64,000 bases of DNA. It comes from Oikopleura dioica (lineage: Eukaryota > Animalia > Chordata). Under the pieces are notes generated by a model. The model did not search any database, had not been told where the DNA came from, and saw nothing but the letters and a program-made list of their open reading frames with translations. The stretch spans positions 3,534,001-3,598,000 of the forward strand of contig OU015569.1 in the NCBI GenBank assembly GCA_907165135.1, read 5' to 3'. Position 1 is the stretch's first letter. Each line of letters starts with the position of its first letter. A program made the translations under genes and the position numbers. Shown here piece after piece: positions 50,601 to 59,051 of this stretch.

Positions 50601-53600
50601 AAAGTTCAAATCCGTGAAAAGGGTATCAGTGCACTCGAAGCTTGGCTTAAAGAAGCACCTCTTTCCTACTGGTTCGACGACTCCAATTCCATTGCGGAAC
50701 TTCTCAGCGATGCTAAAAAAGTACATTTGCGGTATACCTTCTTGTCCTGGCTGTCCGATCATCTAGCTACCGCGAAAAAACTATCGTCCAGTTCACTGTC
50801 GGCTTGTCTTCCTCACCTGTACAATTGCCTTGAAGATCGCGATGCAAAAGTCCGTGAAGCAGCGACTAAATCGCTGGTCAGCTTTATGATCCATCTCGGC
50901 TTTCCAAAAATGGTCAAAGCTTGTGGAACCAACCAAAAAGTTCGCCTCGAGTTAGAAAAGGCCAGAGAAGCTCTTCCAAAAGTTGAAGTCAAAGCCGAAG
51001 TCATTAATCCTGATGTCTTGATGACGACTAAAGATTGTGGATCCCCGCCCACCAAGAAAACTAAAAAATCCGAAGAAAAGACTTCCACGGAAAAAGTCGA
51101 AAAGAAACCGGAAAAGAAGACACTCAAGAAGTCGAAGTCCTCTTCAAGATCGCTGAAGTTGGACAAGGATGATATCGGAGAAATTATCACGGGTATGTCA
51201 AAGATCTTTTTGCAAAAATATACTAACTCTTGTTTTTCAGGAACAGAGAAGGCCAAAGATAAACGGCGTCTCGAAGACCGAAAAAAGAAAACACTGACTT
51301 GTAGGGTAGGCCAAAAAAAAATGGAAGGTCCGTTTCATCCCTTTTTTCAATTTCAAATTAAAGTTAGTATAAAAACTGACTTTTTTTGTTTTGATTGTCA
51401 TACCCTCACGCGAGGGGAAGACACATTTTTAAGCCCTTCAAAACCGAAGGGCTTGAGGAAAAAATGGCGGCGCCGGGAATCGAACCCAAAACCTCCAGCT
51501 TGGTGGAGGACTGCGCTCACCACCAAGCCATCTCGACTTGGAGGTGGAGTAAAATAAAACATTTTTATATGATTTTTGATATTTTTAATATAAATTTTAT
51601 GAAAAAAATTCATTTTTTATTAAAAAAAAATTACTTTTTTTATAATTTGCCACAAGTGGCAGCAAGGAGCAGCCATTTTCGTCGTTGGTGGAGCAGGAGC
51701 ACGGATTTTCTTCCAGATTTCGAACTCTGGCGGAGAGACAGCGCAATATTTGCGCTTTTTTTCTAGGTGGTCGAGTGCCACGCTGGCAAATTTTGCCGGT
51801 GTTCAGTGCCGCCCGGCCTCCTTAGCATGGCCAGTTTTTTTTTAATTTTGAATTTATTTAAAATTTTAAAGAAGCTGGTCCCCCTTCCCCTAGAATTTAT
51901 GGTAAGATGGGGGCGGGCGCCGGCCAGTTCCGTCGCCGAGCCCCATTTCCCCAGAAACCCACCAGGGATGGTTTCGTCGAACCAGCCCGGCCCTAGCACC
52001 GCGAGGGGGGTCTAAGTGGTGGGTCTGGGGTTGCCCCCTGAAGCCGCGGTGACCGGACCGCTTTAGAGCAAGCCCTGCAGCTCCCTTGAGCAAGGAGTGC
52101 TGGTCTCTTTAGGCCAGCGGCAGGGCCCGAGCCCTTAGGATCCCACCGGCCGGGGCACTTGCCTGAGGCGGGATTATTATCCCACAACCCGAGCCTCTTA
52201 AGGGCAGTGCCCCCTGCCACCCCGACCGTTCCCCTGCCTAATCCGGATCTACGGGCAGGGGGCCCAAGCAAGCCAGGGGGGGGCTTTGCCCTTCCTTGGT
52301 GTGCCAGAAGAGAGCAGTCCACCCACCAGCACGGGTGACTCCCGGCGCGCCCCAACCCGTCCCCGGGATCGAGGGACTTGGTTTTGCCTCGGGCGAAATC
52401 AAGGCCCACCTGGCCCTTGGCTTAACAGCCTTGCGCCGGGCGAACCCGAAATGGGGGAAACTACGGGGGGCACTGGTGGGATTAGGGGGGCTGCCTGGCA
52501 CACGGGCTGTCGGGGTAAAAGTGGAAAAAAGGAGACGGGTCATGCCCAAATTTTGATTTTTTTTTTGTTTTTTAAAAAGAACTTTAAAATGATTTTAATG
52601 GTTAGTATGACTGTTCACAAGACTATTAACTATTCTAAGGTCATTTTTTAGTCAATAAAAAACAGAGATGATCGAAATTATGGCTGAGGGAGTAGGACTG
52701 TAGTGATTATTCATATTTATATGATCAGTTTCTTTAAACACAAGGATGATATAAATTGAATTATCGAGTCCCAAACCGAATAGGCATTGTGAACATTATT
52801 ACTTTCTTTATCGACGTACACATGGAACCGACGACTATTATCCAGGAATATTGCTTATTTTAAAAATCTTTTTGCAAGCAATCTCTGCAGACACAGACGA
52901 CTGGAACCGACGACTCATGGAACACCGCATATTCAACTTATACCAGAACATTCTCCATTTTTTTTGAAAGAGGAATCTACAAAAGCATTTTTACAATTAT
53001 TTTTTCCACACAATATTTTTTGTACTTTTTTCTTCTTTTGTTCATTCAGAAAATAGGTTTATAAATAACTAACGGGACTTTTTTTAGAAATCTCGGTATT
53101 TGTGAAATGTCCGCTTCGAAAATCTCCATCGACTCGAGTGTTCTCTCTGAACCAATGAAAATTGCTGAGCTTGCGAATCGTGCTGGTGTTCCTATCGAGA
53201 AGCTTGTTGCCCTTGCGAAAAAGAAACGAAATGCCAAAGAAAGGGAGGCAGCTAGCTCAAAGCTTGCGAGGAAAATTCTCAGCCACGCGTTCGCCTCCCG
53301 AGAATTCCTTCAAAAAAACACCCGAATTCTGGCAAGTCAACTCCTTACTTTCCCGAACAATGACGAAGTACAGCTTTTTGTTGGGCAACAGCAGGATTCA
53401 ATTCTTGATGCTTCAATGAGAAGCGAGACGAGCCTTGAAGAGTCTATGGGAGAAGACCATGGCTACGACACAACTGTCAATAGTCTCGATGTGTCTCATG
53501 CCATGTCATGTGACGATAGTGAGCTTGTCGAGGAAGACATCATTTCTTCTGGAATCAAGGATGATGCCATCGAAGAAGAACAAACAGCAACAGATAGTTC

Positions 53601-56600
53601 CTCCGTGTTGAAGGATCAAGTCATCCAGGCGATTATCAATTTTCCGAGATTCCGGGCGCATCACATGGAAAAAATACTGGAAATACTTAATGTTGATGTT
53701 GTGAATCCAGATGTGCCGTCCGATACCGAGTCGACCACTGATGCAGAGTCAGTCGCTTCTAATTTCAGTGATTCTTTGGAAGACGAGAAACTCCCCACAT
53801 TGGACAATAACCGAGAAAAATTTTCTCTTTTGAAGTTGATGTCAGAAAGCAACTTGAGGTGAATTTCTTTCTCATAAAATTTATAATAATATCTTTTTCA
53901 GTTCCTATCAAGCTCAAAATGTCGCAGAAGAACTCATTCAACCTGAAAAAGCCCGAGGGCTTAGTTCGCGAAATCTTCGAAGGCTGACAAACTGTTCTGA
54001 AGAGTTGAGCACGGAGCAACTCATCCGGGTCATCGAGAATTCCGACGAATTTGTCCTTGGAACTGACGGCTCGAAAATCGCTTCGAAAAATTCCAAAGTT
54101 ACACCATCCGAGCCGGGCAAGAGTGTTACATCTTTCGAATGGTCAACATCCCAAACGAAGTTTCTGAAACCGTTTGTGAAGCATTTACGACTTATCTGTC
54201 GGAGTTTCCTCGAGAGACTCAAATACAGTTTGCGTCAAAGGTAAACTTAAACGCATTTATTCAAACCAACATTATTATATAGTGCATTGCATTGAGCAGT
54301 GATTCCGCCCCGTCCGCATTGAAAGCCTGCAGGCTCATCATGTCAGCCTTGGACAAGATTCATCCCCGAGAAAGGCTCCAGTTGAAGTGCAGTATGCATA
54401 GGGTTGTACATTGTGAGAAAGGAATCCGATCATGCATAAAGGGTGTCTTCGATTCGATCTTGGAGTTTTGCGAAGCCTACCTTACCTGCAGCCGTAATCA
54501 CGGACTACACTCAAGCAAGGGCCAGCAGCTCGAAGTTTACTTGCAGGCTCTGCGTCTTCGGGACGGACTGGAGAGAGTGACAAAGCCTCTAGAAATGCAA
54601 AGCCATGTTCGGTAAAAGATCTCATTAAAATCCGATTTACATAAGTCTTCTAGCTTTGGCAATCTCACGCATAACACCCAACGTTTGGTCGTTAATTACA
54701 CCGACATCACCAGCTTTGTTCGCTATGAACTTGAACTCGAAGACGATGCGAAAGTTATGGAAGAGAACAAATCGAAAGCAGTTTGCGAATTCGCCAGCTC
54801 TGCATTGGTTTACAGTGTTATCGTTGCGCCATATTGGAGTCGTGTGTCTGGATTGTTGTCATCAGAGAATTATTTGGGGCTTGAAGAATACTTCATTAAA
54901 ATTCTTCGAGATGTTGCGGAATGCGCTTCTCCAGCTTTATTTCTCCTTGAAGAAGCTAAAAAGACTGAAGTCGAGTGGGAGTGTGGCTTTGAAATGGCTG
55001 TTTTGCAATTGACTGCTGACCAGAACACGTCCAAATATCTTGATGATTGTATAAAGCTTCGACTCAAAGCTGTGAATGAGCGATTTTCCAAGTTTGCTAT
55101 CGACTGCTCATTTCCTTTTACCAAGGAAATAACGTTTACGAATCAGGTTTACTCAGCAATTTATTTCAAAAAATAATTTTAATAAGGACTGCGAAAGAAG
55201 CTTTTCAAACGCGAAAGATCTCTTTTCCCGGAAATTCAACATGGACACGAAGAAATTCGAGACCAATGTCATGACTCGATTTAACATGACCTACAGTTTT
55301 TGGCAACGTCAGCCGGATTTCGAAGAAAAACTCTCGAAGATATTGGCTAAGGCCTCTTCAAAAGAAGCAAAGAATACGGAGAGACGAAAGTCTTTACGAA
55401 TTGAGTCGGCGGCGAGAAAACTTGAGGAAATCCAAGAAGGTGAAGCGAGACGGACACGATTGGCCGTTTTTCATGCTGTTATCGGGGAGAACAAGCTCTG
55501 GCCTTCTGACGATAATGAGGTTAAAGAGTTCATTCATATAAAATAACAAATATTTATAGAACGACGAGAACGAATGCTTCGAAAAGTTTCTACAACTCAT
55601 CAAGCCAAGCTTTACCGGAAAAGTTTCTCTTCGAGAATTTCGTGGACATGTTTTGGATTTCTTGAACAGTCAATTGTCCGAAGAGGACAGGAATGTCATC
55701 AATTCAACCCTGAAGAAAAAGAGATCGAAAAAAGAGCTGTTCACCCAAACTGTTGAGTTTTACAATAAAAATCAATGATTTATCAAAGTACTTAAATTTC
55801 TTGTTTTTATTTTTTCGAAAAAAAAATTGGTTTTACTGGGATTCGAACTCGTGCCTCTTGTATTTGTGACTCTTGCTTATTGTATTTTTAAAGTCTAAAT
55901 CGTTTCAATAGATTGATATATGGCGCCTTAACAGCTAACATTTTGATATTTGATTTTTTGGACATTTTTATATAATTTTGATCTCACGTGACATCACATG
56001 ACCCTCGATTACCAAGAGTCACGTGTCAAAATAATCAGTGGATCATAAGCTTTCGTTTGATATGTTAATCATCCCTATAAAGGGTTGTTTAAAAAAAATT
56101 GATTTTACTACTCCGCGTAAATACGTATGCGGTACACCTTCTTATGAAATTTTGAATGTCTTCCCCTCGCGCTAGATGGTCTGTCAGATACTCAAAATGT
56201 TCGTCTTTTTAAGATCTTTCTAATAAAGTAAAAAAAACTTCTGAAACGCAGGTACAAAAAAAGTTATGAGCCAAAAACCGTATTTTTAGGTTTTGAACCC
56301 TCCGGAAAGTAGGGAAGAAAAAATTTTTTTGGATTTTTTTTTGTTAAAAATTTATTTATGGGCAAAAAACATTAATCTCGTAAAGTTTAAAGGAAATCTA
56401 AGGACCATCCCTTTTTTTGGCCTACCCTACTGACTTGGTACTTCGACCCAGGAACCGCTTGTGGTAAAGAGCTCATCGAGCAACTGAATAGGCAGATATC
56501 GTCTTCTTTTGGGGAAAAGTTCGCCGCTCTCATGCATAAATCCGACTCAACAGCCATTGGTCGAGTCCTGGACATCATTCAGTCCCAGCCTACTGATAAG

Positions 56601-59051
56601 CTCACCAGTGTGCTGGATATAGTTCTCCGGTGGTCGACGATCCGACTGAATGAAAAGAACTCGACTATCACCATGCGGGTGCTCAACTATCTCCACTCAG
56701 TCGTTGAACAGTTGCGCAAGGAGGAATACTTCATGTCTCCCTTTGAAGCCATCCCTCTGTTGCCGCACTTGATTTTAAAGCTCGGAGAAGCTCGTGTTGA
56801 AGTTCGAACTCTTGTCGAACAGATTCTCAATGAAATCCGTCTTCTTTTTCCGGAGAAACAAATTTTCGAAGAGTTACTTCAGGGTGCAAAGTCGAAAAAC
56901 TCTCGTCAACGAGCGGCTTGTTTAACCATCTGCGCTGGAATGATCCAGAATTCGGGCATTGAAATCATTGGTGATCCAACGAAAGGAAATTACAAAGAGA
57001 TTGGTGCTCATATTTCTGATAAGGATCAAAACGTACGATCAAGTGCGATGAATTGCCTTGTCGAAGCCTATAAAACAGTTGGTGAGGAGCTTTTCAAATC
57101 AAGAATGGTCGGCAAGCTTGGAGACAAGGAAGAGTCTTACTTGAGAGAGCGGATTAAACGAACACTCGGAACGTCAGATACGTCAGCCAACGAAGCTCCA
57201 GTTCTTGCTCCGAAAAAGGCATCTGAGACTCCACGCCGAGGAACAGTAACGCTTAAAAAGGGTGCTACACAACCTGTTAAACGAGATCTGCCTGAGGTGT
57301 CTAAGAGCGTGGACAGCAAGCTTATGGAACGATTCGGCTTCAAAGTGCCAACATCAGCTTCTATCGATTTTAAGTCACCAGTGATGAAGTCTGTCAACAG
57401 CGAAAGCATCAGTAAGGTTCCCCGTCCGCCGAGTGCTAGTAGCCGTATTCCGAAACTCGAGAAAGAAAAAGAGATTGAAGAGCTAGCGAATCTTGTTGAT
57501 CACTTCTATCTTACCGAAAACAAGATAGAAGATTTGCGAAAAAAGCTAAACACGCTCAATCTTGCGACTTTCAGAGATGGTGCGAAGACCTTGAAAATTA
57601 TTCTGAATGAGACAGAAAAGCCGATTTCTCTCTCAGATCAAGAGCTTTCTGGTCTTCTCTTGCCTGTCGCGAAAAATGGTCTCCAGCTCTCAAAGCAAGC
57701 CATCGATCAAGGCGAGCTTCGTAAGTTCTTTTTCGATAAAATAATAATATAAAATACTCTTTTAAGGTGTCACGCAGCATGTGACAATCCTTTGCTGTAG
57801 CATTCTCCAGAAGTTTATCAAAGGAAAAGACTACCGCGATCGGATTAACGGAGATGACTTGGCTGCAATTGGAGCATTTCTATTCACCATGCTCAAATGC
57901 AGAGAAGCCCAGGTAGAACGGCATAAGTGCTTGAATTTTAATAATGATTGTAGGAGATCATCAAGACCATTGATCCTAAGTTTACTTCTGCGATCCTACA
58001 GGTGATCAGTGATGTCTCAAAGCAGTGCAAACATGACCGAGTATCCCTCGTAAGTATTCTTTGTTAAGAATTTTCAAATTTTATTCGTTATTAAATTCGG
58101 TTTAGATGTACTTGGATCTCATTTCAAGCGCCCTTCGTGATGAAAAACTGGAAGAAATTCAAGCGATTAGCAACAATTTCTACAAGTTTTTCACACTTCG
58201 CAATACGACGGAGAAGCTGAATGAGAACGACGTCTCGAAAGTCTACTATCCAGCAGAAAGTTTCTTCGCGGAGTTTCCTAAAAGTCACCAGGTGTTCAAA
58301 AAGAACCCTGAGTATTTCAACGCGCTGAGGTTTTATTTCAATAAGTAAGATATGAACTAACTATCTCTCGTAGAACGGTTGTCACATTTACAACTAACCT
58401 GACTCGCCACAACGGCGACGCTGTCGAAAGATTCATCAGGAAGTTCCAGCCAAAGAAATCAAGTCTTTTGAGCCTCATCGAAAAGGAACTTCTCAAGAAA
58501 AAAGCGAAGGATTCTCAGGATGAAAATGCTCGGCAAGCTTTGTAAGTAGCCCTCATAAATGCTCTTTTTTAAAACAATTGCTTCAGCACAAATGCTCTCG
58601 CTCAAATCAAGAAAGTAGAGAGCCATGACGCCGGATTAGAAGCTTTGCATCAGTTTGTCTCGGCGAACCCAGAATTCGATCTTGATGCGGGACTTTCTAA
58701 AGAGGACGAAAAGTTCAAGGCTTACGTCAATAAGAAGCTCGGCGATAAAAAAGCTGGTAAGTTTTTAGTCAACATTTATTATTCTCAATTAATAAATCAT
58801 GATTAGGTCACGAAGTTACGATGATCAGCAGCGCTCCACCAACTGCAAGCGCTATCGAACAACGGGCAAAAGTAATGAGCGAGAAATACTCTCTCATTTC
58901 CCAGCCCAGTAAACTGAAGAAGCCGACTGCAAAGGACGAAAAAGAAAACGTCTCGACAGCGGCGCCAGTCGAAGCTCGGAAAGTGCCCTCGAAGAGCACC
59001 CTGGACGAGTATCGAAGACGACTGGAGCAGCTGCGCAACGCTAGAAAGTAG
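47667..59051 (+). CDS. CKAP5: Microtubule polymerase CKAP5/XMAP215/ch-TOG, interrupted by a transposon at 51302-56429
   Basis: Tandem TOG domains (HSNWKGRKMGYE, SKKWKDRGAAL, DKIWKVRLEGL, DKNWKLRKEAL); the sequence resumes after the insert as LTWYFDPG..KELIEQL; C-terminus LDEYRRRLEQLRNARK*. Confidence 0.95.
51465..51537 (-). other. tRNA-like / Pol III promoter relic inside the transposon's left end
   Basis: 73 nt with A-box TGGCTTGGTGG, D-stem GCTT/GAGC, B-box GGTTCGATTCC, ending CCA followed by T6; the acceptor stem does not pair. Confidence 0.6.
53107..55778 (+). CDS. hAT-like DDE transposase, 6 exons; apparent 1-nt frameshift at A-run 54086-54090
   Basis: FVLGTDGS (D1), CIALSSDSAP (D2), LKCSMH (CxxH), HVRF (RW-equivalent), TNQDCERSFS (E); five GT-AG introns. 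Confidence 0.8.
55828..55890 (-). other. Second, more degenerate tRNA-like relic near the transposon's right end
   Basis: B-box GAGTTCGAATCCC (55838-55850) followed by ...CCA and an oligo-T run on the minus strand. Confidence 0.35.

Follow-up and report, generated by a model that had tools for sequence, protein, structure and literature searches.

A young, polymorphic hAT-type transposon in a CKAP5-like coding exon of Oikopleura dioica, with candidate splice sites near its ends

The stretch of Oikopleura dioica DNA analysed here (the window, 64,000 nucleotides) contains a hAT-type element of 5128 bp, which carries its own gene and lies inside a coding exon of a CKAP5/XMAP215 gene. This insertion is a young, polymorphic allele. 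The reading that we favour, with a probability of about 0.6, is that it affects one of two CKAP5/XMAP215 paralogs, that the host message would be disrupted or badly processed, and that a pair of splice sites capable of removing the element in frame is coincidental. A sequence-only reading of this stretch had proposed that the ends of the transposon supply such sites and thereby make it a candidate intron: this observation is partly confirmed.

The anatomy of the mobile element within the CKAP5-like exon is real (Table 1). The two terminal inverted repeats (TIRs), TAGGGTAGGCCAAAAAAA, form a perfect 18-bp inverted repeat that starts with TAGGG, and the two copies of the 8-bp target-site duplication (TSD), CTGACTTG, are identical. 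hAT elements are characterized by short TIRs beginning 5'-YARNG, by a DDE transposase with an RNase-H-like core and a hAT C-terminal dimerisation domain, and by a TSD preference of the form nTnnnnAn. The TAGGG terminus fits the 5'-YARNG pattern. The first 61 nt of the exon precede the element, which entered where the fifth TOG domain begins. The GC-rich module in the interior of the element has one further copy in the genome, in the C4 element at 96% identity, and corresponds to no Rfam family; scans of the element revealed neither a tRNA nor an Rfam family that came close to its gathering score.

Table 1. Features of the insertion and of the interrupted exon, in window coordinates
Feature	Position	Strand	Evidence or remark
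5' part of interrupted CKAP5-like exon, codons ...TEKAKDKRRLEDRKKKTLT	51241-51301	+	After 48-nt intron 51193-51240; open frame
Left TSD copy CTGACTTG	51294-51301	.	Identical to 56430-56437
hAT-type DNA transposon, own gene inside	51302-56429	+	TIR and TSD; site lacks element in X5 and four metagenome contigs
Left TIR TAGGGTAGGCCAAAAAAA	51302-51319	+	100% complementary to 56412-56429
Candidate donor GTAGGC in left TIR	51306-51311	+	Exon end would be 51305, phase 0; rough PWM 5.2
GC-rich internal module	51880-52540	.	Composition profile: ~66% G+C vs roughly 40% for the genome
Six-exon gene, public model OKI2018_I69.XSR.g14271	53107-55778	+	ORFs, frames; P0006 identical to exons
Exons of g14271	~53107-53858, 53902-54240, 54283-54611, 54654-55146, 55187-55528, 55560-55778	+	Boundaries +/- 1-2 nt
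Candidate acceptor AG	56401-56402	+	Exon would restart at 56403; rough PWM 3.8
Right TIR, opening with T7 run 56412-56418	56412-56429	+	Inverted-repeat match to left TIR; X1 contig gap-free here
Right TSD copy CTGACTTG	56430-56437	.	Identical to left copy
3' part of interrupted exon, WYFDPGTACGKELIEQL..., TOG5-like domain	56438-57749	+	Open for 440 codons from 56430; Pfam XMAP215_CLASP_TOG E = 3.4e-11

The allele is young and polymorphic because the same site is empty in another sample, X5 (joint 51292->56429, which skips 5136 positions) and in four ocean metagenome contigs (L059-L062), across which the exon junction is uninterrupted. Rebuilding the empty site by removal of the element and one TSD copy restores an open frame, ...KKKTLT|WYFDPGTACGKELIEQL. 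X5 additionally possesses a near-identical element at another locus, with 0 differing letters over 51302-51495 and with other flanking DNA. The mobility of the element is thus seen both as presence/absence polymorphism and as a copy at a new site: the Okinawan lineage of O. dioica has hAT elements that are mobile at present.

The wider family displays the same signature, with a perfect 8-bp TSD in 18 of its 19 complete copies. The TSDs have T at position 2 in 16/19 and A at position 7 in 13/19, and this bias fits the hAT target preference. The core pattern of the TIR occurs 40 times in the genome, as against 0 occurrences of the reversed control. A long ORF runs across the rebuilt empty site for the CKAP5 copy, for L054 (in a carboxypeptidase exon) and perhaps for L040 and L046; the rest of the 19 are found in short-ORF DNA. 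A usable donor is furnished only by the GTAGG variant of the TIR, with the GTCGG form scoring -1.4.

The window belongs to the X-specific region (XSR) of the male reference OKI2018_I69, which is haploid in the sequenced male. Hence, this male had only the interrupted allele: he was hemizygous here, yet reached maturity. Pfam recognizes XMAP215_CLASP_TOG at three places in the upstream exon, which encodes 918 aa (E = 4.8e-28), and at one place in the downstream exon. The CKAP5-like gene is not single-copy, with one fragment and one full-length paralog, the latter at C2:4163163-4167028, 575 kb away, 48-58% identical and without stops. An argument from an essential single-copy gene at this locus was rejected in view of the full-length paralog. 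Because the paralog is intact, the need for the interrupted copy to work is weakened, and it provides another reason for the viability of the male.

Several components of the proposed intron are borne out by the sequence. The GT at 51306-51307 (AGG|GTAGGC) is in phase 0 and lies inside the left TIR as had been described. The AG at 56401-56402 is likewise in frame at the right end of the element; its position is subterminal and outside the right TIR, as it is 10 nt internal to it. Joining 51305 to 56403 produces the predicted KTLT-CRDHPFFWPTLLT-WYFD, which is open and longer by 39 nt, i.e. 13 extra residues. Since both sites are part of the element, every target would be left with the same remnant of 39 nt (4 + 27 + 8). 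The sequence-only reading had made the frame conditional on the length of the T run in the right TIR. In X1, a set of short-read contigs from what is probably the source sample, a contig of 18.9 kb spans 56391-56800 without gaps or differing letters, and T7 therefore stands; a T6 form of the run is present in other family copies in X5.

The strength of the two sites was assessed with matrices that are rough and iterative, being derived from heuristically inferred introns (median length 47 nt, matching the species). By this measure the donor at 51306 is average, at about the 28th percentile among inferred real donors; among all GT it reaches the 93rd. The acceptor at 56402 is weak, at about the 6th percentile when set against inferred real acceptors and at the 83rd against all AG. 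No pyrimidine tract precedes the acceptor. Inside the element, 55 AGs match or outscore it, with stronger acceptors at 51433, 51871, 53901, 56213 and 56289, and there are strong internal donors and five strong introns of the element's own gene (scores 5-9), on the same strand as the host.

It had further been claimed that other GT/AG pairs in the vicinity lead to stops or frameshifts; this did not hold up. Pairing the usable donors among 12 GT at 51250-51559 with acceptors at 55900-56519 gives 336 combinations, 27 of which (8%) are open in frame, i.e. 26 besides the proposed one; at L054, the family member in the carboxypeptidase exon that served as a control, 22/155 are open. An in-frame pair is hence at chance level. 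Exact removal of the element with one TSD copy, inspected by eye, would have GT-AG ends in 0 of 10 registers, the aligned register being AC..CT. Two oligo-dT raw-read RNA runs (X11, X12) had 0 reads on the CKAP5 exons at a likeness of at least 90% and only low-complexity partial matches; as these exons are without coverage, the runs are uninformative and do not constitute evidence against splicing. The GT(51306)...AG(56402) pair would appear to be a sequence coincidence of ordinary strength, although some transcripts may use it.

In the favoured scenario, a mobile hAT with its own gene would have entered a CKAP5-like coding exon in the X-specific region in the Okinawa lineage, with disruption or bad processing of the CKAP5 message as the most likely outcome. 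This could take several routes: read-through to the stop at 51555-51557; capture by the splice sites of the element; or early polyadenylation. AATAAA occurs within the element on the strand of the host at 51553, 52654, 55764 and 56222. The sequenced male would have tolerated the allele by virtue of the intact paralog, or because males can do without the interrupted copy. Several points weigh against this scenario: aberrant processing is conjectured on the same footing as clean splicing; a mature male with the interrupted allele alone is also predicted by splicing rescue; the donor at 51306 is a reasonable one, preceded by a mini-exon of 65 nt whose upstream acceptor is strong; the spliced product is plausibly functional, as the TSD recreates ...LT|WYFD; Ds insertions in maize exons are reportedly spliced via terminal sites; and the splice-site matrices are rough.

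It is possible, though a good deal less probable, that another cryptic in-frame pair removes the element from some transcripts, resulting in a leaky, hypomorphic allele. Such a pair could be formed, for instance, by the donor at 51363 (AAA|GTTAGT) or 51306 and the acceptor at 56402 or 56480. There are 26 alternative open pairs, the donor at 51363 (6.35) and the acceptor at 56480 (6.65) both score above the proposed sites, and the maize Ds insertions in exons provide precedents; against this, in several of the resulting products the conserved WYFDPG with which TOG5 starts would be lost or exchanged for other residues, and the same internal splice sites and AATAAA motifs would compete.

That the donor at 51306 and the acceptor at 56402 are themselves used, yielding a functional CKAP5 with a linker lengthened by 13 residues ahead of TOG5, appears improbable to us. 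The weak acceptor, at the 6th percentile and without a pyrimidine tract, would have to prevail over rival acceptors and donors, five own introns of the element and four AATAAA, all on the same strand, and an intron of 5.1 kb would exceed the median length in the inferred intron set (47 nt) about 100-fold. Open in-frame pairs are common by chance, the paralog takes away the need for rescue, and the 18-bp TIRs could pair in the RNA and mask the donor. In its favour, the pair is in frame and open with T7 confirmed, the donor score of 5.2 is one that inferred real donors also have, the male was viable as a hemizygote, and the addition is a fixed 39 nt with a TSD that restores the residues beside the conserved WYF at the start of TOG5. 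We regard as similarly doubtful the proposition that an active transposase-encoding hAT, with the donor placed in its TIR and the acceptor subterminal, would on entering an exon of a hemizygous essential-type gene be hidden immediately as a gene-bearing 5.1-kb intron.

An artefactual join, in which mis-assembly or a chimeric long read would have placed an element not truly present here, might be suspected in a Nanopore-based assembly with homopolymer errors, and is rejected as extremely improbable: it is contradicted by X1 contigs of 10.9 kb (left) and 18.9 kb (right) that cross the junctions unbranched and without differing letters, and the perfect 8-bp TSD on both sides of the element speaks against it. 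The homopolymer errors for which the sequence-only reading had cautioned are present, with X1 showing +AAA after 51458, +C after 51886 and +A after 54085. A search of X1 for an empty-site contig found none. The depth of X1 is 78-84 over the element vs 97-116 over the flanks, which leaves room for some empty sites.

hAT elements of maize (Ac/Ds) inserted in exons are spliced from the message via sites in the element ends, and spliced RNAs are said to have been demonstrated for Ds. The O. dioica insertion resembles the maize Ac/Ds cases in being a hAT with an 8-bp TSD in a coding exon, in possessing a candidate terminal donor, and in the short remnant, possibly in frame, that would stay behind after its removal. 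Spliced RNAs like those of maize were not seen in the two O. dioica runs, which lacked coverage of the CKAP5 exons. Further, the maize cases are mostly short non-autonomous Ds, whereas the present element is 5.1 kb long and contains a sense-oriented gene of its own with several exons, and the host is an animal with 47-nt introns.

Two other comparisons draw on PMC11282704. In the larvacean Fritillaria borealis, as described there, thousands of short fixed introns are derived from MITEs, have AG-AC or AG-AT ends and are removed together with one TSD copy (Henriet et al. 2019, in PMC11282704). On that description the two cases share a larvacean host and transposons with TIRs and TSDs at intron positions; the O. 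dioica candidate differs in being GT-AG, in leaving 39 nt and in being a single polymorphic allele. Introners are depicted in the same review as short, non-autonomous and efficiently spliced elements, many copies of which are introns (Huff et al. 2016; Gozashti et al. 2022; PMC11282704). The likeness to introners so depicted is a DNA transposon whose sequence could supply splice signals. In contrast to them, most of the 19 complete O. dioica copies are at sites without a spanning long ORF, and many copies acting as introns were not found among these 19.

If carriers of the allele were to splice the element out, a chordate whose genome is very compact would offer a live, genotypable case of an autonomous DNA transposon giving birth to an intron. 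Intron gain by such an element would have been caught at its first step, with the allele still segregating. The case would connect what has been observed for Ds in maize with larvacean intron turnover and would be testable in laboratory culture. Users of the annotation should know that, in the OKI2018_I69 reference, the allele of this conserved gene on the hemizygous X is interrupted and that the CKAP5-like gene therefore cannot be modelled there as a single unit.

The product of the element's own gene, g14271, is probably a divergent hAT transposase. The public model is distorted by an assembly frameshift: the frameshift in exon 2 is present in the assembly only, with +A after 54085 in both X1 and X5, and exon 2 is read in one frame in the paralogs P0013 and L042. 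Pfam was blank for every exon of the gene and for the paralogs, a PDB sequence search with the transposase candidate gave no match, and a look-up of contigs encoding the protein had none on record. An AlphaFold model of the paralog P0013 (9-row alignment) has a mean pLDDT of 62 with a poor catalytic part, and Foldseek against the PDB returned 0 matches at E <= 0.001; as the model is poor, this blank says nothing on the fold. HMMER recovered only 7 relatives among 1.84 billion representatives, all apparently from Oikopleura. At the level of a lead, the language-model neighbours in the Atlas are nearly all hAT proteins (ZBED RNase-like, DUF659, DUF4371, Dimer_Tnp_hAT), at 0.77-0.87. Motifs read by eye in the candidate transposase include GTDGS, SSDSAPSALKA, CSMH and CERSFS.

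The insertion in the exon is genuine: a young hAT allele of a CKAP5 paralog, carried on the hemizygous X of the male that supplied the reference. The element begins and ends with a perfect 18-bp terminal inverted repeat (TIR), TAGGGTAGGCCAAAAAAA, and is flanked by an 8-bp direct duplication. Deleting the element together with one duplication copy reopens the frame, so that ...EDRKKKTLT runs directly into WYFDPGTACGKELIEQL.... The insertion point is 61 nt into an exon of ~1.37 kb, shortly after a small intron. The host gene had been called CKAP5 from the sequence, and this identity stands because XMAP215/CLASP TOG domains are found both upstream and downstream of the insertion.

The assembly (64,281,565 bases in 19 contigs, the contig of the window being 12,959,145 bp) comes from a single mature male sequenced with Nanopore and Illumina; it is described as 64.3 Mbp in 19 scaffolds, with an X-specific region of 12.9591 Mb whose read depth is half the autosomal value (PMC8008620). 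The window lies in this half-depth region, so that a single allele of it was present in the sequenced animal. In X1, a run of the probable source sample, unbranched short-read contigs cross the left (10.9 kb) and right (18.9 kb) junctions; no empty-site contig was seen among the X1 contigs, which drop rare variants, and depth is somewhat lower in the element (78-84) than in its flanks (97-116).

The uninterrupted state is found elsewhere. In X5, a run from a different study with a different organism label, a 2.7-kb contig joins 51292 to 56429. The site is likewise empty in four ocean-metagenome contigs, which retain the upstream intron (protein identity ~99% in three and 87% in one), and a 74%-identical protein of another lineage reads KTLTWYFDPG. 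It follows that the insertion is a derived state, of recent origin, and polymorphic. X5 also holds a copy of the element: an 8.8-kb contig begins exactly at 51302 with zero differing letters and runs on into other DNA, and internal parts show 1-2 differences per 1.3-2.3 kb. Judged from these sequences, the element is evidently active.

Coordinates of the insertion, the proposed splice sites and related features (splice scores from rough matrices)
Feature	Position	Strand	Details
hAT-type element	51302-56429		5128 bp
Direct duplication	51294-51301, 56430-56437		CTGACTTG
Upstream intron	51193-51240		48 nt
Proposed donor	51306		score 5.2; 28th percentile of inferred real donors, 93rd of all GT
Proposed acceptor	56402		score 3.8; 6th percentile of inferred real acceptors, 83rd of all AG
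Element's own gene	53107-55778	+	six exons
GC-rich module	51880-52540		about 650 bp, ~66% G+C
Nested unit	51690-51729		40 bp; 15 or more genome copies, 93-95% identity; X1 depth about 600
Nested repeat	55975-56112		~135 bp; 14 or more copies, 74-81%
tRNA-like fragment	51460-51535	-	GGCGCCGGGAATCGAACCC...
tRNA-like fragment	55838-55860		GGGATTCGAACTCG...
Control element	L054:1501-4169 = G000:C5:1988414-1991082		2669 bp; GTCGG TIR variant; TSD TCCTACAC
CKAP5/XMAP215 paralog	G000:C2:4163163-4167028	-	full-length, without stops; 48-58% identity
CKAP5 fragment	G000:C4:14060109-14060736		chr1; contains stops

The sequence-only reading proposed that the element is spliced out in frame, and its geometry is correct: the GT at 51306-51307 is inside the left TIR (AGG/GTAGGC, phase 0), the AG at 56401-56402 lies 10 nt internal to the right TIR, and joining 51305 to 56403 gives KTLT-CRDHPFFWPTLLT-WYFD, an open frame with 39 additional nt. 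Its caveat about the T7 run is settled by the 18.9-kb X1 contig, which spans 56391-56800 with zero differing letters or gaps; the homopolymer errors it suspected in this assembly do occur nearby (by X1, +AAA after 51458, +C after 51886 and +A after 54085). Since donor and acceptor are both part of the element, the pair would add a fixed 4 + 27 + 8 = 39 nt at any target; an in-frame remnant of this length is a one-in-three coincidence, and by our own reading two of its three phases lack stops.

The in-frame pair is no more than chance. Other nearby GT/AG pairs were said to give stops or frameshifts, which proved wrong: 27 of 336 pairs around the ends are open and in-frame, as are 22 of 155 at the control locus L054, where another family copy splits a carboxypeptidase-like ORF (384 open codons when rebuilt) between ...GPLSY and TFELRDEGRFGF, just before TFELRD. 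The matrices used for scoring derive from ~120 heuristically inferred introns (median 47 nt). The acceptor has no pyrimidine tract, and 55 rival AGs inside the element score at least as high, 18 of them at 6.5 or more. Reading 3' from the donor, the first good acceptors come at 51433 and 51871; splice sites belonging to the transposase gene have scores of about 5-9, and four AATAAA motifs lie on the same strand. By these scores competition within the element is heavy. Given this and the weak acceptor, CKAP5 transcripts entering the element would be likelier to be mis-spliced, captured or terminated than to lose 5.1 kb cleanly.

Were the gene essential and unique, a mature male with the interrupted allele alone would be strong indirect support for splicing. 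The gene is not unique: a full-length paralog lies ~575 kb from the insertion, also in the X-specific region, and the male's viability is hence not strong support; either compensation by this paralog or a sex-limited role of the interrupted copy would suffice. A run search found no RNA run that contains the stretch, and two raw-read oligo-dT RNA runs (X11, X12) have 0 reads on the host exons at 90% likeness or more, which is not evidence against splicing. Removal through exactly 51306/56402 would be possible but is unsupported (probability about 0.1); in-frame rescue by any splicing appears unlikely, if less so.

Maize Ds elements, reportedly spliced from exon sequences, are the closest precedents. 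MITE-derived introns of Fritillaria borealis and introners (PMC11282704) are also close; introners are marked by many intronic copies, which this family lacks, and the element has no GT-AG ends that would allow its exact removal.

The genome has 19 complete copies with TAGGGTnGGCC termini, 18 with perfect 8-bp duplications, and the target duplications prefer T at position 2 and A at 7; at the sequence level, the TAGGG terminus with such duplications is a hAT signature. Just four family copies have the gene: the window element, a truncated relative on contig C4 and two on C5. Its product, a probable divergent hAT transposase, had no match in Pfam or PDB sequence searches (it is very divergent) or, as a mediocre predicted model, in Foldseek; a complete HMMER search of 1.84 billion representatives found 7 relatives, and of the clusters returned by two language-model look-ups almost every one is hAT RNase-H-like or hAT-dimerisation, with scores at lead level. 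We infer hAT-like motifs in GTDGS, SSDSAPSALKA, CSMH and CERSFS. The public model (Oidioi.mRNA.OKI2018_I69.XSR.g14271, Oikopleura dioica) agrees with the six exons except for half of exon 2, some 50 catalytic-core residues, skipped because the assembly misses the A after 54085; this A is present in short-read contigs of X1 and X5 and removes the apparent frameshift, and exon 2 is a single frame in paralogs.

GTCGG-TIR copies examined for ORFs had no transposase-like ORF and carried tandem repeats instead. Those examined (L032, L034, L037, L040, L041, L046, L053) are 3.5-4.5 kb, with long arrays whose unit translates as ...RVGLAPYLTESKKRGWPPL..., and look like satellite-carrying non-autonomous hAT elements. 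Within the window element, ARAGORN calls no tRNA at the two tRNA-like fragments, which may be what is left of a tRNA-derived element. The GC-rich module has no Rfam match; it is 96% identical to the C4 copy, neighbouring parts being just 75-87%, and in X5 it is covered 2-6x as deeply as the remainder of the element.
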